A stretch of 64,000 bases of DNA from Ophelia neglecta. Its lineage: Eukaryota. This document shows positions 44,701 to 64,000 of the stretch, one piece after another. The position numbers and the translations under genes were made by a program. The stretch covers positions 46,314,001 through 46,378,000 of the forward strand of contig OZ260661.1 of assembly GCA_965285935.1 (NCBI GenBank), read 5' to 3'. The notes beneath the pieces are model-generated. The model worked only from the letters and a program-made list of their open reading frames with translations. It did no database searches and was not told where the DNA came from. Every line of letters starts with the position of its first letter. Within the stretch, counting starts at the first letter, position 1.

Positions 44701-47700
44701 TCCTCCATTTTAGCGACACGGTTCAATCCGATTGCTTTTTCTGGTAAAAAGGCAATGGAGTTTGCAAGAAAAAACGGCACTGCTAAAATGCACTCTCGGT
44801 AAGGACATCACGAGAGCCAAACGTCATTGTTTTGAAACATGCCTTCCCTCGTTTATGTAAAATAATAATCTATAGGCTGGCTCTCCAAACAGAGATGGCC
44901 TGCATGCTGAGTTATGTATCAACCGATATAAGTACAGGGTGAGAGTTTTCTAAGTACAGTTTAATGGTTTGCATTTTCAGTGAAACAAAGAAGAAAGAGG
45001 CGTAGTTTCTTGTCGCAGTGTATACCAGCAGCACTTCTATAGGCCCATCGGAGGAGTTACAACGATTACATACCGCGGATTGACACAGGCGGTACCTCTC
45101 TCACTTGCCGCCCTATCATCCCACTATCTCTTCCAATATATTGGATTTTTCCCGTGGTTTAAATGGTGTTAGAGGCCCGAAAATCAATGGCAGTAAGCTT
45201 TAGAAGATTGCTGGCCTTCGCCCTGGGCGCACACCGTATTGAACGCAGATCCTAATTCCATGTCGGTGAGTTTCTAAAATAGCTTTGCCGCCTCCCAGCT
45301 TGCCCGGAATTAATATGGGTCCTGGCCCCGGTGAAAGTAGCACATGTTTTCTGCAGGACATTTCCTAAATGTGATAGGGCTACGTAGATCAAAAGGGAGC
45401 AAATTGGAGAGAAGGCAATGTCGACCTCAACAACCCGATGAAAATGATGCTTGTAGTGATTCCAGTATGGTTCATCAGTATGTCCTGCAGCCACCGGACG
45501 AAATTGTGAATTTCCTTAAACACATGTATAGTGAGCTACTCTCAGACCGCTAGAGTGGATTCGACTCAGTAAATGTCTTTTACATAGGCCTATATATATT
45601 GTGTGTTTATTGAGAATTTCATAGCCGCAGGCATATATTGCTGTTTTTGATTTGTCGTTTAATAAAGTCAAAACAATTATATAATTCGCATTAGAGAGAG
45701 AGAGAGACTCTTCCTCCCCTACCCCTGTCCTAAAACAGGTTAAGTTATTTAAAAAAATGATAATAAATACTAAAGTATACATAAACCTATATTCCCGTAT
45801 TTATAGTTTTGTTATTCCTGTATTATCTTAAATACTTGCATGTTGCCTCCACGCCATCAGACTTCCTTTGTTCCAGTAAGTCTGTACTATTAGTGGTTTG
45901 TCTTCTCCCGCTGTTCACTAACCGCATCCAACATGCGACCATTCCCTGTTAAAAAATTCAAACGCTGAATAAGTGGGTGCGATTTTGAAAGCATCTATTA
46001 CAATTGGACACCAGCGTGCTGGCAAATGCATGCCGATACTATGAGGTCAATAGAGCGTCATAATTGATTCTTACACAATTTATTTTACGGACACAAAATG
46101 CGCCGAGGCTATTTGGAGAAATTACCCTCAATCACTGACAGTGCCGCCCTGTTGGTTGTCTGGAAAATAAAATGTCGGTTACGTGTGGTTTACACAACAA
46201 AGAGGGGGAGAAGAGTGACACGCCATCCTCGCCAGTTTGAGAAGACCTAAATCAAGGTTAAAATAACAGTGATTATGAGGGGCGGTCAAGCTTGATTATC
46301 TGCTAATGGCCTATACCCGAGATGGCCAGACAGACAATGAGCCCAATTATACAACTCGCGTCCTAGACTCGACTTGACATGCCTGTTTTCAGACAAACAA
46401 ACTATCGATGACAGTTCGCCTTTCGATCCGGACCCTACCAGAAATGAGATCTCTTTTGTAGCCTGTCGGTGGGAGGTGGGTAATTTAGGCCCAGGGTGAA
46501 ACCCTCCCCCCGAGCTGGGTAGTGAATGTACCCCAGTCGGAGCCGAGGGGAACAAATGCCCCATAATGATGAGTTGAACATAATGGATAGTTTTGAATAT
46601 ATTATCACCTTCGCACAATTGAGGAAGAATAAAAAGTGTGTTTAGTAGTGCGGGTGTGGGGGCATTCTGGTGTAACCCCGAGACACCTCCCCGGGAGACG
46701 GGACCGAGGCAAAGGCACACGGACTAAATTTGCTTGTTCTCAACTGACAAAAGTGATGACACTTCTTTTCACCGTAGACTTCAGTTTGTTCAGGCATGTG
46801 AAAAATTTGCTTTTAGAAATCCCCCTCGCTAGGCACCATGGTAATTAAATTTAATGGCGGATCTGTTTTAATGGCTGAATAGACTGGCATCTCCTCATTT
46901 TAAGCACCTTTGTGTGGTATCCGAAATGGGAAATCGACGAAATCTAAACACCACAAAGTCGGTAAATATTTATCTCCCATGGGGTGATTTACAGATTAAA
47001 CCCCGGCTCTCCACGACCTGATATAAATCAAAACGGCGCGTCCTTTTGTGGGAGTTTTAAGCCTCCTATCTTCTTCTGGTCCCTAAAAGCCCCCAAATCG
47101 TCTCTTCTCAATACGTTAGCCAGATCCGACCACATGGGGTATCTAATCTTGTTTAAAAATAATATTGTATTGCGCGGTTTTGTGCTGGGGTGATATCATA
47201 CACCTGCTAGGGATTTGTCAAACCCGGCTCACTTATCATCTGACTTTCACAAATAACATACTGCCAAATTTAAAATTGGTACAAGTTTCATAAAGATTGA
47301 CAAGTTATTTATCATACAATGTTAAGAATGTGTAACAAATTTTCCAGTGTCCATTTTTATCATAACTTAATCGGATTGTCAGTTATTCAATCCAGTCTTA
47401 AGAGCGCACACAGGTTAGTAACACATGTGATACAATTTTAGATATAAAAAATATCAAATATTGCTATTTATATAAATACACATTCTTATAAATGCCTAGG
47501 ACTTATTGTCACTAGTACGTTATATGATTTCATTATAAAAGTTCGTAAGCGTTTTAGATGTAAAAAATAATTAGGTGTAAAAATGAATAAACAAATTCAA
47601 TGATTGAATAAAATAAATGAGTATTTAAGTATCAAAGAGTGTCAAGCTGAAAACATTCCAGGTTAGAGTTGTTTATCGCTTTCCAAGGGCCAGATAGAAA

Positions 47701-48209
47701 AAGTATTTTTCAGCCTGGCTCATCACATAGTCATAACACAACTAAAAGAACACAATTGATTACAGTGTATATATATTATCAAATTTACACCGTGTAATAG
47801 AATTTGATTCAATAAAACGAACAAACACCTTTTCAGTCGCCATGGAGGCCTAATTGGGGTATTTTAGGAGTATATTTGTAGGGAGTATATTTGTAGGGCT
47901 ATCGTGGGTGAAAAAAATTAAAATAAATATAGGAAAGCGTACTTAAGATTTTTGCATTTACAGCTAAAATTATTTCTTTGGTAATGAGAAGGATATTTTT
48001 TCTCCAGTAGCCTTCTTAACGACTTTAAATATGCTACTAAATACAGAATTCGTTGACTAATTTCCGATGAAATTACATTATGCAATTATTAATTATTTTG
48101 CTAGCGATAAATATATTTACTTAGTTCATATCTAAAGCCTGTACTAAGCGTTCAGGCTAAAAGATAAAATTGCAATGACACAAATTGGGTTTTCCATACG
48201 GGTAATAAT

Positions 48210-48215
48210 TTTATT
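48210..48215 (-). terminator. Candidate polyadenylation signal (AATAAA) for Six3/6
   Basis: AATAAA on the minus strand followed about 25 nt later by TTTGTGTC...TTTT. Alternative AATAAA hexamers lie at 49364-49369 and 48743-48748; I cannot choose among them without RNA data. Confidence 0.3.
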
Positions 48216-49668
48216 TGACTATACAACAAGCTACAATGAATCGTACGTGATGATTACGCCGTAGGTTTTCACAAAACATAATTACATTATGTAGCTTTAA
48301 AATAAAAATTAGATAGATTTTAACAAGTGTGTATAATAAAAAATAGTTATCAATACCACCAGTAACACCCTGTAGCCGGATTTTTTTTCTCTCACAATTC
48401 TGATGATACGATATGATGAAAAAATTCATTATGATAAAACTCATAATAATTAAATACCACTGTAATGACATTGAGTTGACATAATCATAGAGTTTTATAA
48501 TGACAAATATCAGTAATAAATAAATATCATTGCCTTGCAAAACCGGCAAAGCGAAAAAATTGTCTATGGCAAAGATTAATTAAACCATGTGATTGATATG
48601 AGTGTGCCATGCTGTTGCTTTAATCGCCGATTTTCTCAATCTCTATGAATGAATTAAGTGGTAAGGTTCAAACCAAGTGAAGAACAAATAGCATTGGGTT
48701 AAATATTACAATATTTTAACTATGAATAAGCACTCCATCTGCTTTATTGTGTATATTTGAATATATAAAGGCAAATATAATATCTGTTGCTAGAAGTTTC
48801 TACTGATACCATGCATTTATACCACTATATTATAGGCATACGACATGCCGGTTATTTAACACACGTATAATATCCAACATTTAAAATATTTGTTATAAGG
48901 ACAAACTTTAAACATAGCTTACTTTTACCAAAATAACGTTAAACGTTGAAACATACTATGCCAACCATAAACACTGAATCCATGGCAAAGGACAAGTAAA
49001 TAGTGTGATTTTGACAATTCATTTACATATAAGCAATGAGATATATTTCTAAATGTCTGCACATGAACTGGTATATAAGATATCTCAGTGGTTCAAATTT
49101 GACATCATAAATGTGTTGGGGGGGGGGGGGGGAGTTCTGACAGTTTGCAAAGTTCAGGTAATAAATAGCCATGTTTTTGCCCATGTACATTCTTGTCATA
49201 CGCCAAACAATACAGTTATGTGTGTGCAAAAACCAATTTGGTATACTATCGAGTTTTTTAATCTTTCAGAACTCCACCCTAGGCCTAACTATCACCCCTG
49301 TCTTCCTGATCATATCAGCAACACACAAGGTAGCCTGCCTATAGGCTATATGTGATACATATATTTATTTAGGCCAAATCATGCGCGTCGTATATTTTCA
49401 GATGTACAATTCATGATAGATGTTCTGTAAGCTCTGCCCTCTTAATTTACGCACTTGGCTATGCTTTTCGCCATGAAAAAAAGCACAAGAAGAAATTCCT
49501 TTGAAGTCTTGAAAACAATTATACCTTCAATGGTAAAGTGAACATGCAATCTTCAATTGTCAATGCGTATGCAGACAGACTAAATTGGCATCAATGTTCA
49601 TTAAATCCTGGGTTATATTATAGCACTTTTAGAGTATGTGCCTGCTTGCGCATGCAGATAAGCCGCGA

Positions 49669-50142
49669 TCAGTTCTTGTCCTTGTTGTAAAGACCGGCGG
49701 CTGGTACCCAGATTGGAAATGGTTGACTGAGAGGTACGTGAAGCGGCGGATGACGGAGAGGGAACGGTTTTTCTGGAGGGTATTCCCGTTGTCTACCCTC
49801 CCGGGGATTGTGGTCCCGGTACCGGGGCTCCCCGCCCCTCTCTTCCCCACATTTCTCTGGACTCTCAGGCATCCGGGGCGCCAGATGTCCTTCGCCCGTC
49901 CCGCGTTCATCTTCCCTTACGACTGTGCTACTGGCTAGTGCCTCTCTGCCTCCAGCCCTCTGGGGTGAACATACACCTAACGCGCTGGGTTGCCCTCCTC
50001 CCATCAGAGGAGACGCTTTAAAGTTCAGCCAGGCTGGCATTGGGGCCTGCATTCCTTCTCGACTGAGCCCGCCCGTGCTCGGTTCCTCGCTGCCCTCGCC
50101 CGATGGGCGAGGACGCGAGTCCTCCCAAGGGCGGGCTGCTAG
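49669..50142 (-). CDS. Six3/6: Putative stop-codon readthrough extension of Six3/6 (157 codons after the recoded UGA; extended protein 435 aa)
   Basis: Stop context is GCA TGA CTA G. The frame stays open to TGA 49671-49669; ORF-track entry 49669..50052 is its 3' part (50142-50052 = 90 nt, in frame). High GC persists to the second stop and then drops. Confidence 0.7.
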   Translation of the reverse strand, partial: LAARPWEDSRPRPSGEGSEEPSTGGLSREGMQAPMPAWLNFKASPLMGGGQPSALGVCSPQRAGGREALASSTVVREDERGTGEGHLAPRMPESPEKCGEERGGEPRYRDHNPREGRQREYPPEKPFPLRHPPLHVPLSQPFPIWVPAAGLYNKDKN

Positions 50143-50144
50143 TC
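50061..50144 (-). promoter_or_regulatory. GC-rich RNA stem-loop immediately 3' of the Six3/6 UGA (candidate readthrough stimulator)
   Basis: Basal stem AGCCCGCCC (50137-50129) pairs with GGGCGGGCT (50074-50066). Apical hairpin CTCGC-GTCCTCGCCC-ATC-GGGCGAGGGC-A-GCGAG (50119-50086) gives 15 bp with one G-U pair and one bulge. Paired by eye. Confidence 0.7.
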
Positions 50145-50341
50145 ATGCGGGATTCTCCCGAGCTTCCGTCCCCGCGCCAGTGGAGGAGGAGGGGGTGGAG
50201 GCCGGGGAGAGCGAGAGGGAGGGACTAGTGGGAGGAGAGTCGCCTACCACGTCCGGTTCCTCCAGATCATCCTCGTCGTCCGTCTCGTCACGTAGTCTCG
50301 ACTGCATGCCACTCGAACCCGCTCCGCCATGATTCAACAAT
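50143..50341 (-). CDS. Six3/6: Six3/6 coding exon 2 up to the first stop (acidic, Ser/Pro-rich C-terminal tail; full protein 277 aa)
   Basis: Strong acceptor with compatible phase, and a GC-rich island in AT-rich flanks. Reads (R)LLNHGGAGSSGMQSRLRDETDDEDDLEEPDVVGDSPPTSPSLSLSPASTPSSSTGAGTEARENPA*. The KNRL...SGM.S pattern resembles vertebrate SIX3. TGA is at 50145-50143. Confidence 0.88.
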
Positions 50342-53300
50342 CTGTAACAACAAAAACAAAATGTAGGAAATTTCTATAACATAGTCTATTCTAACTCGAC
50401 ATCTACTGAGCATTCACTGAAGACAATATTAACATTTATTTTTAATATTATAGTGTGTACACAGTCGAAATGTTTATTTCGATTCACATCTTACTTTCTG
50501 GAGTATATTGGGCAAAGAAATAAATGAGTTACACTGAGGTAGGGGTGATACCTTTGCCTATATAGACATATTATTCAATTAAACAATGATTACAATCATG
50601 CCTATACAGGCTCATGTGTCTATATCTAAAGCAGTAAATCTTCCAGCCCGTAGAGATGTATACGGGAATAACGATACACGGAAAGATATTAAATATATTA
50701 GGCATAGGCCTATAGTATATATAGGAACAAGTAGATGATGTAAAATCGATCTAGAATGGAACTAAAACCATAAGTATATTATAGGCCTATAGCGAGTGGT
50801 GATAATAGACACGAAGGGGGCTGATCATTGAGATTCTCAAGACAGCCCTCAATCAGAAAAGAAAATAGCAAAACTAACTTGCGCAGGCTTGTTTTTCCTG
50901 TAAGCTGTAAGACATTTATGCTTAGACCCATTTTGAATCTCTATGCCTCAAGAGGTCGTACATTTCTTTAATTGTTACGGGAGTTTGCTTTATTATAGGC
51001 CCATATACATACTTTTTCGTTTCGTTGTTACGTGATTCATATTTTAACGCCTAGACTAATATAATTATTCGATCTAGGCCAATATTTTCCGTTATTCTTT
51101 TTATATGCTTTTATAAACATTTCTTTGCTAATGGAAATCCGGTTTTTTACAAGTTGGGTATTTCATTTCCAGCTAGGGGGGATTTATAATGTTTATATTT
51201 TCTTTGCGAATATATCATTCGTTAATTGTTAAGAGTTCGGTTTTTTTGCACATAAAATTTGCCATGCATATGGCTATTTTATTTTATTTAAATATGTTTT
51301 ATAGTTTTACAACAAATTCGGCGTTCATATAAGGAATCACACAAATAACGGCGATAGCATTTCTCCTTTACTATGAAAATCGTGCGAGAACCGTTGACCT
51401 ATACACGTTCTACGTATTTTCACTTTTCTTTTGTTAACGGCTACTTACTTCCGTTAACCTAGTAATCTTTAGACGTCCGTTTCTAGTGGTCAACTGAATG
51501 AAATAAACTCGAGCATAAGTGATGGCTGGTTAGTCTCTTCTCTGGTGTTCACTTTATAAACTAACCAATAGTTATCTCCTAAGGGTCTTTAATGAAAGAA
51601 ACTGTTAAACAACTAATAAGTGTTTCTATGGGTGCTTGAGTGATACTAACGATATTTAAAGCATCTTTGTACAGTAGCTGTCAGACTTTCTTCAATTACA
51701 AAAGTGACAAATTCCTTAATGGATCTGCCCCCATTTAACCACAATACCAGCTCCACTTTCCTGCTTGGCGCACAAACATGATTGAATGCTGGTATAGGCC
51801 CATTCATTCTTCAAACATTCGCCCACCGCTTGCATCTTTTAGTGTTCTGTATGCGCTCGGAACTGCTAATGATGTCAAGAGCATTGTTTCTATTTAGTTT
51901 TCCGTACAATATCAGAGAGCCTTACAAAATCAATGATAGTCATTACGGCTGGGGAGAACGAGAATAGCCGGGTGTCGTTTCTCAGCGGGTTTGATATCAC
52001 ACGAGCTTTGGCTAGGAAACTGACAAGGAAATAAGCTATCGTTATCCTTTTGCCGAAGAAATGCCACGGCTGGGACTGTCAACAAAACAGACAGGTGTTT
52101 GGTAAACCCGGCAGCACTAAATGACAGCTTCAGATTTATTAGCTCAAGGTAATAATGAGTTTTTCTTCACCACCAAAAAAAAGTATGATATGGCATGGAT
52201 AATCTTAGAACTATATAAGCATACATGGAGGAGAACATAAGTACTATAAAGATATATAATTAACAAACTGTTCTTTGTCCACTAAAACAGTCAGTAACTT
52301 AACACTCAAGCCCGACTATAGGCCCGGGCTATGGAATTATTTTAATAAATAATTATGAACAAATGTATCCGTTCATTTTTATATTAGACGGACAATTATT
52401 TTGTTATGATTCACAAAAACAGATATATTCACTTGCAAATCAATATGTTATGCTGTGTTGACAATATTTGCAACTCAGATTTAACATATTATGTATCAAA
52501 AATATAGTAAGCGGATGTGCATTTCCGAAAGCTATGGCAAAAACAGTAAGAGCCTCAACTATAATATTCAATAACTATAGGGTTAGATTGGTTCATCAGA
52601 GAGCTGGAACTCACAGACAAAAACACCTTTGTTGGATTCTTGTTATGATCATTACTGAGCAAAACAAAAGTACCATGAATTCGATTTGAGAGCTTGAAAT
52701 TTACTCTTATAATATAAAAGATAATATTTACAACGTGAGCGAACGGAAAAGAAGGCCTCATCTTTAACCCCTATAGGCCTATAGGACCTAGACACAAAAT
52801 ACCTACAATTCATCAGTCTGTATTTATTTTCTATCCAACGAATTGATCGATAACACTTCACTTGTAGTTTGGATACATAAGACATCAGTACAAGTATAGT
52901 AGACCGACCCAGAAGTCGACAGATAGTATGTATAAATCCCCGTCGAGTTCCAGAGTTATATATTCTATACCGTCCACCTATTATCGCCCGATGAGAACTT
53001 CGTTCGCTATAGGACCTTATCATTGCTGAGCACCGAGTTTATAAAGCTATTAGATTCTAGGTACTCGAGATAAAACTCAGTTGTTGTTTATTTTTCTTCG
53101 GCCCTGGCAGCTTGTTTTGCTTTATCGAACCTTCCATCATAATTATGCACAGATACATGTATGGGAACATTTATAGGCGCAGATAAGACGACTTAATGAA
53201 AAATGACAACGCCGGCAATGTTGTGCACGCAAACGCTGCTGTTCTGCGTAATTATATTAAGTTATTATACTCAATCTCACTTAGTATCCACACTTCTCTC

Positions 53301-56300
53301 CTTTCGAAATGAAATCGTTCCACCGCGTAGGATCTCTCCGGTTAACGTCACACAGAGAGATTCATTTACATCGAACAAGCGCAATTATTGCATTTTCTTG
53401 ATCAACATGATCACTGGCAATAAGAAAAGATTAATGTTGGTGCCAGGTAGATGTGAACTTAAAGCAGCATGCAGGCTTATTTGTTTCACTGGAAATATTC
53501 TGTCACGAAGCACAACTGATTCCATTTTATAACTGTAAATTATATGTATTCGTCAATTTGAACCAGCTACCATTAAGCGTTCATATAGGTCCTAAATCTT
53601 ACCCTTATCTAAAAGAGTGGTCATTTTCTTTAACCACTTCAGTTCTGAATTTCCTGACATTATTAATAACAAACATTTAGAAAATAGCAGCATTTAAAAT
53701 GAGTACCCCAATTATTCATAAGAGAAAACTAATCATATCAATAGATATGTTTTATTCTCATGCTCTGGGGAATGAAAGGCAGGTAACTTTTACGCAATCA
53801 TGAATGGGTTGCTATGTAAACGAGAAAGTACAAAATTTTAACGGTTTTTTATTTTTTAAAGTATATATCATAAATAATATTTTTGAATTAATCGTTTTAT
53901 AAACAAATGTCCTGCATCTGAATCTACATCAAAAACTATCAGACACATGTTTCTTTTCAATTTTGAGACTTCTCCTTCATTTAACTATAGATTTTTTAAA
54001 TGAATAGGCCTAATTGCATGTTAAATATAATATTTGCTACAATACATTTTACATTTATGACTGAAGAACTGCATATTATATTTGAAATCTGCTAAAACAA
54101 AATTGTTCTTAACCAATGAGGGTAATTGACAAAGTCATGAGGCCAATTTTGCAACTAAATCATTAAATTCACTTGGAAATGAACCAAATCTTGATGATAT
54201 TCAATGTTTAAAAGATCCAAAGATCCAAATATATTATTTTATTCTGTATACCGGCCTATAAGAGGTTAGGGGAATATCCCCTATACTAGTCATACTTATA
54301 TACATATATACATACACCGTATACATATGGTCTTGAGTATTTGGATTGAACGAGTATTTGGATTGAACGCTGAAGTTAGTTCAGGGACACGTAAAAGCCT
54401 TCTGCGAGTTGAGAAATTGGCCAAACACTTCTTAACTCTATACTGCTTGGGGTCAGTAACTAAATATGTTCCATTACAGCACTAAGAACCAGTTTATTAA
54501 CTGATTGTGACCGAAAGAGGGCCTAGCTCCCAAGATCCGAAATAATAGCAGCACAGCCATTGTGCGCCTGTCAATCTCAACCTTCAAGAATGTAGCTTGT
54601 TTCACTCAGCCAGCCCCAGGTCGTCGAGTTTTAGGGGCTATGAATAGCATCACCGGATTTCTGTTTGTGCAAAAATAACAATTGAAATGTAGAAGCGCAT
54701 ATCTTTACCAATCAAACAATGATTCACTTCGAAGTAGGACACTGTTAAGCAAGCTCTCTTGTTTGAATACTGAGTGACATCAGTGGGACGGCAAACTGAT
54801 TTTCCCTCTGGGTCTGAGAGAACGACACAACTCGACAAATGAGGCCCCAGACCAAACCAGAAGAGAGATTTTGAGGCCTCATATAGGCCTATCAAAAGGA
54901 GAAAATAAATACCATATCGTTATATTTCGCACGTATTGCTCACCATTTGAACTAGGCTAGTATGTATTTTAATCTATAGCCATTTTCTTTAAGAGCTACC
55001 TTCTTTAATTGCCGTTCATCTCATGTTGAAACTTCAAACCAACTCATCTCTTCGTTTTAAATGGTTTGAGAGATTTCTTGGGTTTCCACTAGGAACATAA
55101 ACTAACATACCTAGCCAATCAAAATACGAGAAGCACGTCTGGAACTTTTATACTGATCCAGGCCAACTGTTGGCACTCAATATCGGTCTAAAATGACTGT
55201 TTATCTCCTTGTACTTCTTAATTTGCATTTAGAATTACCTTAAGAAGTGTCAATTAGGCTCCAATATGGGAAAAAATAAGAATTCATTTGGTACTTCAAA
55301 GGTTTAGCAGACGAGTGTGCACAAGAGGTGTACTAATGTGTTTTTTCCTCGACGAATAGTCCTCTTAGCTTGCGCAAATACGACTTTCCATTTAGAGCGA
55401 TAATGGGCCAAACAAGTAAATGTGCCCTTAAACGGATCGGCTGTAGACAACGAATAGAGAGAGCAAATAGAGTAAAATGTCCGGGGCTCGCTGTCCCTGT
55501 ATATAAACATATCTATGTGTATGAATACCACCTCAGCTCACCGCTAAGCCAATAACTCGTCATTGATCTCCTAATCGATCACAACCAGCATGAGAAAATA
55601 GAGACAAACTTTAGAACCGGGCTCATGACACATTTTCAAAAACACTGGTTGCTTACTGTTTGAAATAACTTTCAATGCACATTATCGTAAACATTTACTT
55701 AGTATCTTTGTGTATTGCAAGGTGTCAATGTGGCTTAAATTGTAATTGAAATAAAATTTCTCCCGCGGGGGGAGGGGGAGGTCCTAGGCAGATCTTCTGA
55801 CCTTCTGAGTATTTAATTGTACATATTTACAGAGTTAAAAATAATAAAAACCGATAGTTGTGAGGAAACAGTTAGAGGGCCAATTACGTCTCAGTATTTC
55901 AATATCTTTCAATCTGCTTTCCGTATTCTTCCGATTCTCAGAAACTATTAATTTCCTCTAGTTCAAAAACCATTTAAATTGCATTCTTCTTCTGATAAAT
56001 ATGAAACCGTCATGGTAACATTTACGAGAGAAAAAAACCAAGACATGTACAAGCAATAAAAACATATCTCACACGCTTATTAATTTTGATGAAGCAAAAT
56101 AATCTAGTTCTTAATACTGCACCATGAAATATAGTAGATTTGTTGCAGTAGAGTTAGTGCCTGAACAGACCTGTGTGTCAAGAGAAATAAATATAGACCT
56201 TTAAATTCACGTTTTCTGACTAATCTCACATTATTTGACACGATCATGGCTTGTACTAACAAATGTCATTTACTTGTGGTTAGACTCCCAGCGTCAATTG

Positions 56301-59300
56301 CTGTACAGACTCTGACCAAATCCCGCTAACAAATTTAGGAAAATGTAATAATGGGGGAGCAGGCCGCCACGTCGCCTCTGAGAGTTTCCTGACACCTAGG
56401 TCATTATCTCGAGGATAAATTTCATCGGGTGAAAGTGTCTCGGAGAGTCTTAAGATCCAGAGCGAGGGGACTAAGAGCTCTATGCCAACCTCTTCACACA
56501 ATGAACCCACCAAAAACTTAGAAAACTCTCCAAACCCTCTCGACAAAGTCTCTATTTAGCCCCATTTAGCAATAAATTGGATTGCTATGTCGTAGTGGTC
56601 TTGATATTGCACAATCTGTCTGCTTACATTTGTCTCTCGCTGTGATATTTATTTAGGAGATTTGTGAATATTGCAATTGTGAAATTGTTTCCGTGACAAG
56701 AATTTGAAATCCCGTGAATTAAAACTATGTTATTTTCTAGTAGGCATATATTGGCGAATTTTGTGTCAATTTAAGGACGCCCCCTTCCGAAACATAACCG
56801 ACGTGATAATGAAACCCGACACTCACAAGCTAATTGCAGGTTGTAATTTAATTTACACGAACATGGGCGGTCAGAGTTCATTTTTGGAGAGTGATTTGCC
56901 GCTAATTACTCTGAGTATCTGGCATGACCTCCATCGCCAAGGCAGCCATTTTGTGTGAAAGGAACGCGGTTTGTTTTGGTCAGTACACTACCTCAATATT
57001 GGCCTGATCCCTTTCTGTTGGTGTGCCAAAGTGACCAAAATCACATAAGAAATATTTGAGAAAGCTATTTAGAAACAATAAGAGCTAACAACAGAAGGTG
57101 TTCTGAATTACAGTCAATGTTGACAGTATACTTGTGCTGAAATCGTTACTTTAATCAAGACGGGGCAGGAAATTCGAGGGGATATTGAGAATAGAGTGCT
57201 TGCTCTTAATCATTATGCAGCAATTTGTTGACAGTGCGACAACACGGCACATGATATGACCATGATAATCTACGATTAACATTAACACAAGTAAAGTCCG
57301 TTTGATTTGAAATGTGTTTCACCGTTGGCACCTGTGCCTACGATGGCAGGATATAATTTGTCTCCGTGTTTACATTCAGTCCGGTCCAGACATCGATCAC
57401 TCGGATACTTTACTTTTTACATTGTTCCTGGCTCTGTGTAAATAAAGGATTCCATCAATTCTGAAGCTATTTCGTTTTCTGATTGGCTGCCTTTCATTTA
57501 GACAGATGGGGCATTTACAGCGCGGCAAAAAGGCCAGACGACACATACAGGCAAACCGTCGAGAAAGCCAACTTATAGTTATATGTGTAGATCTTTTCTC
57601 AAGCTGTTGGAAAGCGCTATAAGTGTGTTGAGAACAGATGACACGATATTTATTGTCCAAAGGACATAAAAGTTAATGCAGAAGTATTTTGGTTGATTTA
57701 GTCTAATTAACTTAACCTTAGCCATGGAATTTTCCCAGCATTGAGGCAATAAACGATGAGGATCGACCTGCTGTATACTCTTACCGGACTGGTTACATTA
57801 TCCTTCGATCGAGATATCGTTCATACAAAGCATATTAACGCGGTTTACTTAATTGTACACCATTGATGAGTCCTATATTTTATATAAGATTTTGTTATCC
57901 ACCCTCATCTAGTCGATATTATTGCATTTTCTGTATAACATTTATTTGTGTCAGCTGCCAGCCGAGCCGACGCGTAGCTTTCCAGTACAAGATAATCGGT
58001 AATTTTGGATAGCCAAGCCATCAAACGTGCCCGAAGCTTTGATATTTCTCGCCCATTTGCCAATGAAGATCTAAGTGAGCACACTTGTGACGGAGAAGAG
58101 AACATCTCTGCATGTTGTGACAAAAGACTCATCATGGAGCCGACACAATGAGCAGAGCTCTGTGCTGCCTGGCACAAAGACCCGCTGATGAAGACTCTTG
58201 TCGGCTGCTCAACGCGGTATCAGTCGTCTGCCTCGAGGCGGCCAGCCCGGGAAATCGACAAATGTTGTAGCAACTGGGGATAAATATTGAAAGCTCTCTT
58301 GATTGACCATTTTAGGCTTAACGAAGCGGAAGGCACTGCGGGTCAAACGCTACTTTGCCGGGCTAGTTCGCTGAGTAATGTGTAGGCAAAGTCCGGCAGG
58401 TTGACTCCGGGCGGTTTTTGACAACGATACTAGATTGAGTCGGAACAACAGATTGAAGCTTTTTGCACCCTTTATGATCCCTTGAATTAAATTTCACCAA
58501 TGGCAGTTTCATACAGCCAGTATACAAAGCATGCACAAATGTATGTAGGCCAATAGCTGCATTTACCATGCAGGCCAATGTAAGCCTACAAATATGTCTA
58601 GCCCCCCTTTTGTATATAATCTGTGTTGACATTCGACTGAAATAGGCACCTAAAAAATTGCGAATCTAAAGCAACCTGATAGAATTTAGTCGAGTTACAT
58701 CCTGTTTGGTTTATACCGTTCTGTGAAATAATTAGAGGGAAAACTGAACCATTGACTGAGAAATATCAATATCTGGATTAGATGAGCAATGTGTCTATTA
58801 AGTCAGTGAGAGTATAAGGCTTCCAGCTGGAGGGAAACTTCTCTGTAATTACTTAAATGTCCTCGATTGGTGGTCAGTAAGCAATCAAAGTCTAGCTTCT
58901 CACATCTTCCACAATAACACACTCGGCTTTCCGGAGGCGATGGCCAACTGGCCATTTCGTTTTGTCGAAGTTGGCAGTACAGTCAATCACATCGCATGCT
59001 GCTCATGGCTCACTGCATAGTCAATTTCCTACTAAACGTCACTTAATTTGGCGTAAAGTTGTAGAATAAATCGGGGAATTAATTAGAGGATGTTTGTTTC
59101 TGTGGAAATGATAACGTTATTAGATGCATTAGCGTAGATGAAAGGGCATACAAGAGCAGAAAATCTGCCCGATATCCTAGTTCAACAACAGGCCTATCCA
59201 AGCATGCGTGGAATGATGGCGATCATGAGCAGGTTCATTATCAAGATTATTACAACATGCACAACCCATTTGATCTTCGAATGTGCAATACTCGATTGAA

Positions 59301-61591
59301 TTATCATTGAATCTCTTCAGATACATTGCCGTTTTCATCGAGGCGAGGTGATGACAAATTCAGCCCTCATTGCTTTTTTCCTTTAGACCTATACAATACG
59401 TAATTGCATGCAACCAACGTCATGTTCAGGCGGTCTTTGTCAGAATACGGATGCACCCACATACTTGACAGTCTCGTCTGACTATGGTTGTCTAAAAATG
59501 TCACGTCAAAACTGTGCCGTGTTCGTATGTACTGGTTTGTGAAATGTTGGCACTGAATGCCCCGAGGCCTTGGAGCAATATTACCACTATCACTCTCAAT
59601 AATAACATACTTATAACTCTTCAAACTGCCAAAGAAAATATGATTATTGAATAATATCCTAAAGGTCATATATTCCAAAGAATACAACCCGAAAACCAAT
59701 AACTCTCTGAGAAAAGGCTTGTCCCATAGTATGCTAGACAACTTTCAAGTTGTTACCAAGCAGGGATGCAGCCCTTTCTTTACAGCCAGAAGAGCCATTC
59801 TTATTGTCATATATTTTATTTGCAGAAATATATATATACACCTATTAGCAGTCCAGGCTTTTTATTCAAACACTAGGAACAAAGGAAAAATATCATTTCC
59901 ACATCTCTAAGCTGTATGTATCATTCAAGTGCCTGAGTGTTTACAGACAGCAATACCTTTTTATCCTAGCTTTTCATGTGAAATTAAAATGGTGGTACTA
60001 AGCCTTAACGCGGTCTACCTATGCTATAGCCACTCGTTTTAGTTGGGCCTTTAATATATAAACTAAAATGTCAATCTCGGCTTCTTGTCACATTTCTACA
60101 TATTAAGAATGGCAGTATTCTTCGGGGTGTTCATTTTTGTGCACAAATGATAATCGGAGTCCTTTAATTCCGAAGATGCGTTCTTAGCTTTCAATCCAAC
60201 CCTCAGTGATATTTTCTGCCTCAACTCGCAGCTCAAAGTTGGGTTATTATTGCTGTGCCGTGTAAAGGCCTATGATTGAGTTGTCCTAAATGCTATAGAA
60301 TTTTACAAGAATGGCGTGGCGTAAATCGTACTTTTGCTGTACCACTTCAGCGATAAAACTTCGACAATATCATTTTCCCCGACTAAATTGAGTCTGCCGG
60401 CTTTGAATGACGTAACTGATGCCTGAACATTTCAATAAAATATATGGATTGTACCTAATCAAGAATAAACGATTGTGGAGTGCATTAGAACGATGGGAAA
60501 CAAGTTTTGGAATCTAATCAGAGGGAATAGTGTGTGTTTGGCGCCATACAAAGAATATTATTGGTGGCTGTAAGGACTTTTTAAGTCCCATCCAATGTGC
60601 TAGTTGGTCTGGTGAACCACTCATCATAATGATAGCTTTTTGAAAGCCTTCAAAACTAATACTCCGCCATTACGTCAAATGGTCGACGAAAATAAAGCGT
60701 ATTAACACCGTGCTGCTGACGCAATGACACCTCAGTTTGCACTTATTCAGGTTATGTAGTCTTATATGCGTATTGTGCTTTCTTTTAATTCGATTTGTAT
60801 TTGATAGAAAGGGTTTAGCGGTGTGTGTTATCTTAGCACGGCTGGCAGCATTCAATAGGCGGTATTCCCATCAAATTAAGCATGTATCGCTGACACGAAA
60901 AGTATTGGTCTCGGGGGCTATGACCAGCTGGTTGGTTATTTCAACATCATTTCACTTCTAAAGGCAAAATATTGTAAAACTGTCGCTGATATTTTTCAAT
61001 TAAATTATATGAATGGACGGACAAGTTGCGATTCAAACGGAAGGTTAATATTGCGCTTTGATTTTTTGTAAATATCGCTCCAACATGGCGGAAGAAAAGT
61101 GAACTTTCTGGAGTTCGTTTGACTGCATGTGTGCTAGAACTCGTATTGAATTCGAGGCCGGCCAACATTCCTTAACAAATATGAAACGCTCGATAAAAAA
61201 CACAGCGCCAACTATTGACATTTACACTACAACTCCCATTCGACTTACATACCATTAATTTCCATTCTTAAGAGGGCGTGAAGAACAAGCCCGATTTGAC
61301 CGCTTTATTAATCATATTAAGGGATTGCCATAGCAAATGCTTGATTAGTAGATTTGAATACTAAATGTGTGTTCCACGCTGTGTATGTTTAGTTTACGGA
61401 TCATGGCCTTAGAAAGGCGAGAGCGGACGGATAAACCAGGCAATTTCTTGTCAAATACTTGACATCTGTGAGTGGTTAAAGGACATGTCAATTGGGAAAC
61501 GGATACAGGACACTTTGCACCCAATTTCCCTCTAAGAGTTTAAAGTTCGGTATAGGCCTAGAGCTGAAGGACAAAAATGAAGAAATCGTAC
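50342..61591 (-). other. Six3/6: Six3/6 intron (11,250 bp, GT-AG, phase 2)
   Basis: Donor AG|GTACGA at 61591. Acceptor TTTTGTTTTTGTTGTTACAG|A ends at 50342. The join restores AG+A = Arg and continues in frame (KNR-LLNHGG). The position just after the homeodomain is typical for this family. Confidence 0.88.
54335..54368. repeat. Perfect 17-bp tandem duplication (GAGTATTTGGATTGAAC x2)
   Basis: Directly visible. Confidence 0.85.
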
Positions 61592-62226
61592 CTGTTTTTG
61601 GCTGCCGCGGCCCGGTCTCGTTGTCTGCGGTTTTTGAACCAGTTGCCCACCTGGGTGGGGGTGAGTCCTGTTCCCTGGGCCAACTCACGTTTCTTGGCGG
61701 GGTTGGGGTACGGGTCCTGCAGGTACCATTCCCTCAGGAGGTTCCTTGTCCTCTCCTTGAAGCAGTGTGTCTTTTGCTCTCCGTCCCAGATGGTCCGGGG
61801 CAGGGGGAACTTCTTTCGGACGCGGTACTTGTCGACGGGCCCGAGGGGCCTGCCCCGCAGCCTCTCAGCCTCCTGGTAGTGGGCTTCCAACCACATAGCT
61901 TGCAGCTTGGCATGGGACTCCCTGGTAAACTTGTGGGTTTCCAGGATGTGGTACAAGTCCTTAAAATTGCCGGTGTGGAAGGCTACCAGACAGCGGGCCC
62001 TAAGAACAGATTCGTGTCTGTTTAGGGCGTCGCAGGCGGAGGGGTTGACGGGCAGGGACCACAGGAACCGTCCGAGTCTCTCGATGTCCCCGCTCTCTTC
62101 CAAAGTCTCACAGACCTGTGCCACTTGCTGCGGGGTAAAGTTGAGGGTAGGCAAGGGCGGAAACATCATGATCAATCCCGGGGGGAAGGGGCTAGGCTGG
62201 CCAGGCGGGCCCTGAAGCCCCTTCAT
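61592..62226 (-). CDS. Six3/6: Six3/6 (optix-like) homeobox transcription factor, coding exon 1 (SIX domain + K50 homeodomain)
   Basis: Translation contains [35 protein letters not shown] (SIX domain start) and [68 protein letters not shown]. The QKTH tetrapeptide is diagnostic of the Six3/6 subfamily. First in-frame ATG is at 62226 (gcaATGa); the ORF track start at 62250 is a GTG. The exon ends at AG|GTACGA, a phase-2 donor inside the Arg of KNR. Confidence 0.97.
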
Positions 62227-62439
62227 TGCCTCTAACTTGGAGATATCCACTTTGGCTGTTCTGTGTAAGTCCCAAACAGAAAAAGTGGCGATGTATTACG
62301 ACAGCTGGGCGAACTAGGGAACGATCTGCGCGCACAGACTGGCTGTGTCGGCCTCTCGTTTACAACAGCTTGTTATGAGCTCTCCTCTATGATCATCAAC
62401 ACTATTATACTAAATGTCGGGGTGGAGCTTCATTCTATT

Positions 62440-62600
62440 TCATAGAACTGCTAATGCCAGGTCACGGCCCCGCGAGCTGCCTAGCGCGACCCGAGTGTCG
62501 TCTGCAGCGCGCGCTCTGATTGGTCGGTCTGCTATCTAGTCAACGATCATTGACGGAGTGAGTGCCAATCACTGTCAGGGAAGCCGTCAGCCCGCAGAGC
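62440..62600 (-). promoter_or_regulatory. Six3/6 proximal promoter (CpG-rich, two oppositely oriented CCAAT boxes, TALE/Meis site, Inr-like GCAGTT)
   Basis: CTGACAGTGATTGGCA at 62578-62563, CCAATCA at 62523-62517, CpG-rich stretch 62460-62520 and GCAGTT at 62451-62446, all 220-350 bp upstream of the ATG. Confidence 0.55.
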
Positions 62601-64000
62601 CATTGCCTATACTCGCCTTCCAAGCCGGCAACCACTCGCTCCTTGAAAGCATTGATCGAGATTCTCACTTCTGGACAGATACAGATAGCCAGACCCCTTC
62701 AACTCGCTCTATACAAGTCTCGTCAGCGATAGCTGCAACTTAGATAGTATTCGTTTCGACCGCTTATTCAAAAGCAAAGATATAATTGAAGAAATAGGGT
62801 TATACTTTATATAAAATCACTTATGTTAATGACACCGATACTTTTAATTCCACAGACTAATAAGATTTAGATAGGCGAGGAGATATTTGGCAGGTCTGCA
62901 GGCTACATCCTCCGGTATAACTTCTTTATATTGATTCACCAATCTCTGACAAAAAAGGAAGATGCCGGGCTCTTCTGGTTGACATGGGGCATCGTTTCAT
63001 GCGCTATAAAGAGATTGCTGCGTGTAATTTCAAGAGTCATAGCAGATTTGACAGCTCACTAAAGAATAATTTCTGTTTGCATTAACAGATTAATCCTGCA
63101 TTCGTTAGAGATAATCAATTTACTCGTTTCTTGCGAGGTAAGCATCACGAGTGAGAATGACATTAATTTGATATAACGAAATTGTCACTAGTATTGCTCG
63201 TCAGCCGTCTGCGAGTGTTTTTGTTATGAGTTTACTCATAATGTGCCTCGCCATTTGTACCGGCTTTCTTTGGAAAAGTAATATTCCGATCAAAAACAAA
63301 TTGAATTTGTCCATTGTTTTGGTGGCTCTTTATCAAGAGAAGGATATTAAGAGTCACGCAAGTTGCAGTGCCTAGATACGCTTCCTAATCCAAACAATTA
63401 CGTCGGTTTAGCTGGGACTAAACACACTATCAGATCAAATTCGAGGCTGCGGAGAAACCACCAGTCGAAAACTGTGAGGCACAAACGGCATGATCCGGAG
63501 CCTGGCGTGGGAAACTTCACCAATAAGCTTTGTTAAGCTAGAATATTATCGTTGAGTTTTACAAATTGGCCGAGCCAAACCGCTAGAAACAGAGGCATGG
63601 GCTGGCTTTGTGCTGGCGGATCCCGGAGGTGAATCAAATAGCTCCAAAATGTGCCATCACGCTGGGCACATTACATAAACACCAATTAATGTTGGCTTAC
63701 CAACCTCCATAGGTTTTGGCACATTATATATTACTTACCCAGAGACAATAAAATGCAAATCTGTTTAAGACCGGATCCCATAATTGTTCGTCTACGATAA
63801 CTATATAATTACGGCATGGAGCTATCCGTTTCTCCGAGACCTGTTTAAATACGCATCCTATTGATAATTAGTTCATTAGCAACCAACATTCTAGACGGTC
63901 CTCAAAGGGCCCGACAAATCAAAGCTTAACTTAATATGGATAATGAGCTAGGGCGTCTACAAAGCTAACAGTAGCTGGGTTTTTGTTACCAAATTGAATA

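Follow-up and report, generated by a model that had tools for sequence, protein, structure and literature searches.

Candidate stop-codon readthrough of a conserved UGA in the Six3/6 homeobox gene of Ophelia neglecta

Evolutionarily supported stop-codon readthrough is known in insects from hundreds of genes and in vertebrates from about a dozen, and to our knowledge it is hardly documented in other groups. Here we describe a candidate in the gene for the homeobox factor Six3/6 of Ophelia neglecta, which lies on the minus strand of a 64,000-nucleotide stretch of contig OZ260661.1 (positions 46,314,001 to 46,378,000; this stretch is "the window", and positions are given in its numbering unless a chromosome label precedes them). 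In this gene the frame stays open past the TGA that ends the coding sequence (CDS), and comparison with a distant marine relative suggests that the extension is probably translated by programmed readthrough of a conserved UGA, giving a second Six3/6 form of 435 residues.

The closest cellular counterparts are the vertebrate genes in which UGA is followed by CUAG (OPRL1, OPRK1, AQP4, MAPK10, MDH1, and LDHB; Loughran et al. 2014, PMC4132726). UGA-CUAG is an established high-readthrough motif (PMC4132726, PMC12233894). Readthrough is about 1.5% with UGA-CUA alone; it reached 3.5% or more in every UGA-CUAG gene tested and about 31% in OPRL1, which reads GCA UGA CUAG (PMC4132726). Like these genes, O. 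neglecta Six3/6 is a chromosomal gene with CUAG after its UGA and an in-frame extension that bears a coding-type evolutionary signature, and it shares the last sense codon, GCA, with OPRL1. In the vertebrate set, however, conservation of CUAG is universal and extensions are short, 13 residues in MAPK10 for example (PMC4132726), whereas Six3/6 has CUGG in the sole relative, an extension of 157 codons, and a large 3' stem-loop as a conserved feature.

Such a stem-loop is the hallmark of the type described by Firth et al. (2011) in alphaviruses, virgaviruses, and coltiviruses (PMC3159437). In alphaviruses and several plant viruses, readthrough at UGA-CUA or UGA-CGG is increased as much as ten-fold by extended stem-loops that begin 7-12 nucleotides (nt) further on (PMC3159437). 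The Six3/6 locus resembles this type in its UGA-C(UA), its long stable stem-loop with a basal helix of about 10 base pairs (bp), and a raised synonymous-site conservation over the structure. The class feature, a stable stem of at least about 10 bp that starts a few nucleotides past the stop and is conserved in relatives, was found here with a slightly short spacer. The viral examples belong to replicase genes and have spacers of 7-12 nt and stems that close a loop of 100-150 nt (PMC3159437), whereas Six3/6 is a cellular developmental gene with a 5-nt spacer and a compact 72-nt hairpin. The redefinition element of the SEPN1 selenoprotein gene is similar in having a stem-loop about 6 nt past UGA, and this stem stimulates readthrough even without the selenocysteine insertion sequence (SECIS) (PMC3159437). 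Six3/6 differs from SEPN1 in that no SECIS was detected in 46000-51000, nor is a selenoprotein to be expected.

Insect readthrough genes for neural and developmental regulators (the Drosophila and Anopheles candidates, PMC5100048; the POU factor Drifter, PMC8417969) share with Six3/6 a transcription-factor mRNA, a disordered C-terminal extension, a preference for UGA-C, and in some cases (hdc, kelch) a 3' stem-loop; Six3/6 differs in being a different gene in a different phylum (Spiralia). For annelids we found only a proposed neuropeptide case, cited in PMC5100048, and our literature search returned no paper tying readthrough to Six3, Six6, or Optix.

Exon 1 is 94-95% identical to the Six3/6 of annelids, molluscs, nemerteans, and brachiopods that carry the domains PF16878 and PF00046, and the genome holds one Six3/6, its other two SIX genes being 68% and 61% identical. 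The gene belongs to the SIX3/6 homeobox family and is nearer to Six3/6 than to Six1/2 or Six4/5. The orthologous proteins have 254-287 residues and end just past an acidic run and a run rich in serine, threonine, and proline, as does the 277-residue model; the first TGA is thus where the protein normally ends.

Exon 2 starts at 50341, after a polypyrimidine tract and an AG at 50343-50342, and reads R-LLNHGG...ARENPA before the stop. On the minus strand the CDS ends AAT CCC GCA TGA (50145-50143), CTAG follows (50142-50139), and the frame continues through 157 sense codons to a TGA at 49671-49669; the extension peptide runs from LAARPWEDSRPRPSGEG... through ...PFPIWVPAAGLYNKDKN. A preliminary description of this DNA had reported this layout, with product lengths of 277 and 435 residues, and our reading of the strand agrees with it, the lengths being right if the ATG at 62226 is the start. 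In the extension, each of the two remaining sense frames has six stops.

The evidence that carries the readthrough proposal comes from Tara Oceans marine-metagenome contigs (L078-L083, chiefly L080). Exon 1, exon 2, and the extension were each used as separate search queries, and the exon 2 peptide alone led to these contigs, by way of open reading frames (ORFs) of 74 residues (P0123, P0124). The contigs have the same splice acceptor as O. neglecta Six3/6, a tail 69% identical to that of O. neglecta, and ...NPA followed by TGA in six of six; the 12 nt ahead of the stop are identical in both species. The relative is distant: identity of the exon 2 DNA is 66%, third positions approach saturation (24 of 61 identical), the synonymous divergence (dS) is about 1.4, and the introns give no alignment. 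The TGA being common to both species, it is neither an assembly error nor a private allele, the two artifacts that the preliminary description had wished to see excluded. The relative's tail occurs in two variants, ASPPSSS and ASTPSSS, in different Tara samples and always with TGA-CTGG, and the contigs therefore probably come from two strains or sister species of a planktonic spiralian.

Beyond the stop, L080 continues for 419 nt, and all 139 codons are open to the end of the contig with neither a frameshift nor a stop (the other frames have two and four stops); the chance of this frame staying open is 3.3%. Aligned end to end, the two extension peptides are 46% identical (E 2e-23). When the nucleotides are aligned without reference to codons, each of the seven gaps has a length divisible by three (3, 6, 9, 3, 15, 24, and 3), and 401 of 401 columns are in phase. 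Mismatches are distributed over the three codon positions as 54/41/73 in the extension, a pattern like the 16/13/38 of the canonical tail, and the excess at third over first-plus-second positions is significant (p 2.5e-4). By the Nei-Gojobori method the extension has a dS of 1.46 and a non-synonymous divergence (dN) of 0.48, for a dN/dS of 0.33 (synonymous versus non-synonymous, p 1.3e-6), the canonical tail having 0.21. The first eight codons past the stop encode the same peptide, LAARPWED, with three synonymous changes (CTA/CTG, GCA/GCG, and GAC/GAT), and the GC content of the relative's extension is 0.66 versus 0.27 in its intron. Because the open frame, the in-phase gaps, the third-position excess, and the dN/dS all recur in the comparison of the two species, the extension is under purifying selection as a protein, in the frame of the upstream CDS and across a conserved TGA. 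The signatures expected of a readthrough extension, coding-type evolution past the stop and a stop conserved as a stop and not as a sense codon, were both found, the latter in one relative lineage.

The second conserved feature is an RNA structure. In the 85 nt past the UGA a stem-loop is predicted with a minimum free energy of -54.2 kcal/mol (z -5.1; none of 200 shuffles as stable), and z is -4.7 with the stop included. In a scan of 90-nt windows (25 in the last exon and 20 in exon 1), only two windows, both from the stem-loop, fell below z -3 (-3.9 and -3.1); the other 43 were mostly near zero, the next lowest being -2.9 in exon 1. Significant structure is confined to the first 90 nt or so past the stop, the remaining 380 nt having z near zero. 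The relative has a stem-loop in the matching place (-59.3 kcal/mol, z -6.0), and the length is about 72-80 nt across both species. The 9-bp basal helix, AGCCCGCCC:GGGCGGGCU, is conserved in the relative, where the first pair changes from A-U to G-U and still pairs. RNAalifold on the alignment of the two sequences recovered the basal helix only, the upper helices being in different registers in the two species. Third positions are identical at 17 of 28 sites in the hairpin versus 67 of 166 elsewhere (p 0.06). In both species the G and A of the UGA are predicted to pair with a downstream GUC, extending the basal helix.

The block past the stop was also compared with the rest of the genome, using 30 homeobox and 30 forkhead loci cut from it, 59 of which were usable; the forkhead genes among them are single-exon, so that their stops and 3' untranslated regions (UTRs) are visible. 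The 474 nt past the stop have a GC content of 28-45% in the 59 controls (median 0.36, maximum 0.45) and of 0.62 in Six3/6, and the number of open codons past the stop has a median of 11, a 90th percentile of 25, and a maximum of 77 in the controls, as against 157. The block past the Six3/6 stop thus has the composition of this genome's exons, unlike its 3' UTRs. TGA is a common ordinary stop among the control genes, and the genetic code is therefore the standard one. In the window, GC content ranges over 0.54-0.70 between 50340 and about 49650, with 0.25-0.44 on either flank, and is about 62% over the extension; this GC-rich block is single-copy in the genome, and no AATAAA occurs on the gene's strand within the extension. 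The preliminary description had taken as exon-like a GC content that holds past the first stop and falls within 40 nt of the second. The drop is real, but it is not independent evidence, because an open frame that leaves a GC-rich block produces such a fall automatically.

Within the species, the locus was found only in three DNA-type sequencing runs of one sample, and in no RNA run, which yield single-nucleotide polymorphisms (SNPs) only. The TGA is present in the contigs of all three. The run contigs have four SNPs and no indel in the 673-nt GC-rich block of exon 2 and extension; three of these SNPs lie in the extension, all at third positions (one synonymous, and an adjacent pair giving D>E and E>D). 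In the same comparison region (49300-50657), allelic differences in the intron are denser, with six SNPs and a 2-nt deletion in 316 nt, and the 369 nt past the second stop differ between runs by one 1-nt insertion only.

The readthrough that the preliminary description proposed is supported, mainly by the comparison with the Tara relative and also by the stem-loop present in both species. In our reading it would proceed as follows. Most ribosomes would terminate at the UGA at 50145-50143 and release the ordinary 277-residue factor. Some would decode the UGA with a near-cognate tRNA, inserting tryptophan, arginine, or cysteine, and would go on in frame for 157 codons to the UGA at 49671-49669, giving the 435-residue isoform. 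The signal would combine a weak stop (UGA before C, in this gene with the complete CUAG) with a very stable extended stem-loop starting 5 nt on, which would place the stem at the ribosome's mRNA entrance when the UGA is in the A site. As to the tail itself, the preliminary description had called it disordered. AlphaFold2, run on the single sequence, predicts no secondary structure (mean predicted local distance difference test score, pLDDT, 57); the tail is not of low complexity throughout, however, and contains three conserved islands with tryptophan. The prediction fits a disordered tail with short linear motifs. The islands LAARPWED, PAWLNFK, and FPIWVPA would most likely be protein-binding sites that change the factor's choice of partner or its activity, and the likeness of ARPW to the WRPW-type peptides that bind Groucho is only a lead to a partner.

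Several observations weigh against readthrough of this UGA. The proposal is inferred from a comparison of genomic sequences, as are the route, the efficiency, and the role of the tail, and the comparison involves one relative lineage, whose contig L080 ends short of the second stop. No extension is present in six other spiralian Six3/6 genes: those of Owenia, Tubulanus, Lingula, Crassostrea virginica, Liolophura, and Patella have 0-20 open codons past the stop, GC content falls at the stop in five of the six (in Owenia only past the first 200 nt), and no structured element follows the stop in any of them (z -0.35 to +0.85). The extension is therefore lineage-restricted. The best matches to exon 1, in siboglinid annelids, molluscs, and nemerteans (94-95% identical, none of them close), had nothing like exon 2 or the extension at the loci searched (L011-L013). 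No homologue of the extension was found among 5.8 billion proteins, and among 1.84 billion representative proteins the only matches were two bacterial cadherin-like repeat proteins (P0121, P0122), whose word PAWL(T/N)F resembles PAWLNF(K) at 50017-50040 by chance and which were rejected. A first scan of JGI metagenomes with the extension was empty, and the match from a second scan was a chance PMPAWLNF in an unrelated, membrane-like ORF. No Pfam domain was found in the extension, nor any usable look-alike in the ESM Atlas.

The signal and the codon usage add further reservations. The 5-nt spacer between stop and stem is below the 7-12 nt of the viral examples. The UGA-CUAG context that the preliminary description stressed is present at 50148-50139, but the tetranucleotide is unconserved, being CTGG in six of six relative contigs; UGA-CU and a G at +7 are common to both species. 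The shared candidate signal is therefore UGA-CU plus the hairpin, and the full CUAG is particular to O. neglecta. A 3-periodic Markov model trained on transcription-factor genes of this genome gave the extension a weak score of +5.2 bits in frame 0 and about -56 bits out of frame. Genuine coding tails reach 18 +/- 10 and shuffles with an open frame -4.3 +/- 5.9 (p 0.057), the likelihood ratio of coding tails to open shuffles being about 1 for the extension, and GC content at third codon positions is 0.56 versus 0.68-0.77 in the accepted exons. The intrinsic codon bias of the extension is weak; since the model separates it from open shuffles poorly, we do not rest the case on codon bias.

The marginal codon-model score would be expected if the block were an untranslated but conserved GC-rich element of the 3' UTR or the DNA (an RNA structure, an enhancer, or a CpG-rich region) whose frame is open by chance, an explanation we consider quite improbable. 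GC-rich, T-poor sequence does open such frames in about 1% of dinucleotide shuffles (48 of 5000 and 3264 of 336971), the region 5' of the ATG is also partly GC-rich, and the antisense (plus) strand has an open frame of 192 codons across exon 2 and the extension (49808-50332). The last of these is explained by the rarity of T at sense codon position 1, where antisense stops would need it; an antisense gene of 192 codons on the plus strand was considered and rejected, its score being no better than that of the sense frame. Noncoding conservation would give neither seven of seven gaps in frame, nor the third-position excess, nor a dN/dS of 0.33 at a dS of about 1.4; the structure is significant only in the first 90 nt or so, and such a block occurs at none of the 59 control loci. 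Exon-like GC content and weak codon bias would likewise be explained if the extension were the decaying, untranslated relic of a longer ancestral Six3/6 cut by a nonsense mutation. This is extremely unlikely, given that the TGA is common to two lineages at a dS of about 1.4 with both frames open and under purifying selection since, and that Six3/6 stops at the corresponding point in six other spiralian clades; a relic would also leave the leaky context and the hairpin as unexplained coincidences.

If the extension is translated, ribosomes might still reach it by other means. It is known that a 5' G is the least favoured neighbor for ADAR enzymes. Adenosine-to-inosine editing of UGA to UGG (tryptophan) in the double-stranded stem that includes the stop would account for the conservation of the helix, of the stop that it encloses, and of the coding sequence beyond, and the predicted pairing of the stop's G and A with GUC in both species would suit it. 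The target A (50143), however, has just such a 5' G, and editing needs neither the UGA-C or CUAG context nor a hairpin at readthrough distance; we regard editing as quite improbable. A stop-skipping alternative splice, internal initiation at a downstream ATG, or selenocysteine at the UGA would each leave a coding signature past an in-frame TGA, and for selenocysteine there is the precedent of SEPN1, with a stem-loop 6 nt past its UGA (PMC3159437). As a group these three routes are very improbable. Coding constraint sets in at the very first codon past the TGA, and no AG separates the two in the relative, hence no conserved alternative acceptor. The conserved N-terminal 26-30 residues of the extension lie ahead of any in-frame ATG, and the relative lacks the one that O. 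neglecta has at codon 31; with 26 conserved residues before any ATG, translation very probably arrives through the stop. As for selenocysteine, no SECIS, microRNA, or other Rfam family was found at E<=1 on either strand of 46000-51000, and Six3/6 is not a redox protein. Readthrough of the UGA at 50145-50143 therefore remains the reading we prefer. A more ambitious version, in which the tail is a regulated switch whose three tryptophan motifs recruit a different co-factor and the hairpin ties readthrough to tissue or stage, would give one spiralian lineage two translationally set Six3/6 activities; it is a tentative idea that we hold to be unlikely. The coordinates of all features are collected in Table 1.

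Table 1. Features of the Six3/6 locus of O. neglecta, in window numbering
Feature	Position	Strand	Basis
Six3/6 exon 1 CDS, SIX domain and homeodomain; ends ...AAAKN + AG, donor GT at 61591-61590	61592..62226	-	ORF; 94-95% identity to spiralian Six3/6
Single intron, 11.2 kb, phase 2, conserved KNR-L boundary	50342..61591	-	Donor and acceptor read; orthologue tails continue KNR-L/M; acceptor also in Tara relative
Exon 2, canonical C-terminal tail: 65 codons and third base of split Arg codon	50146..50341	-	69% identity to relative's tail, dN/dS 0.21
First stop, TGA (putatively leaky)	50143..50145	-	Same in contigs of three runs and six Tara contigs
CTAG just past stop (UGA-CUAG high-readthrough motif); CTGG in relative	50139..50142	-	Motif properties from PMC4132726, PMC12233894
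Candidate readthrough extension, 157 codons, predicted disordered, three conserved islands	49672..50142	-	Open frame; protein conservation with relative
Island 1, LAARPWED, just behind stop	50119..50142	-	Identical in relative; three nucleotide differences, all synonymous third-position
Predicted extended stem-loop, 28 bp, 5 nt past UGA, with 9-bp basal helix	50066..50137	-	Folding
Island 2, PAWLNFK	50017..50037	-	Identical in relative
Island 3, FPIWVPA	49699..49719	-	Identical in relative, whose contig stops there
Second stop, TGA, end of extension	49669..49671	-	Sequence
First canonical AATAAA past CDS on gene's strand	49364..49369	-	Motif scan

Some observations on the surroundings of the gene were made along the way. 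About 400 nt 5' of the Six3/6 start codon (62251-62650, minus strand) are patchily GC-rich (0.36-0.70, with a peak at 62451-62650) and are probably 5' UTR or promoter. A Six1/2-like gene (L003, G000:C1:46257372-46257926) lies about 118 kb from Six3/6 on the same chromosome in the opposite orientation, and the third SIX gene (L004, G000:C1:64199663-64200193) is 18 Mb away, so that the ancestral SIX cluster has been kept only in part. The Six3/6 chromosome also carries some ten strong homeobox matches, each of them on its minus strand, within about 550 kb at G000:C1:60.53-61.08 Mb (L019, L020, L022-L024, L027, L028, L040, L043, and L044), a run that looks like an intact Hox cluster. Eight of the forkhead genes, each of about 370-485 codons, form a tandem array at G000:C12:45.19-45.28 Mb (L068-L073, L076, and one more). 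Most have TAA-CCCA at the end and closely resemble one another in their 3' ends, pointing to a recent Fox expansion in this lineage.

With a 158-residue extension under purifying selection across a conserved UGA, Six3/6 of O. neglecta is an unusually clear and well-marked case of candidate readthrough. It joins both of the best-understood stimulators, UGA-C(UAG) and an extended 3' stem-loop, in a gene that is among the most conserved regulators of head and eye patterning in animals. The cassette of about 100 nt is suited to testing a virus-type signal in spiralian ribosomes, and the three motifs are suited to tests of partner binding. With the extension labelled 3' UTR, as automatic annotation would have it, one isoform would be overlooked in functional studies of Six3/6 in this group.

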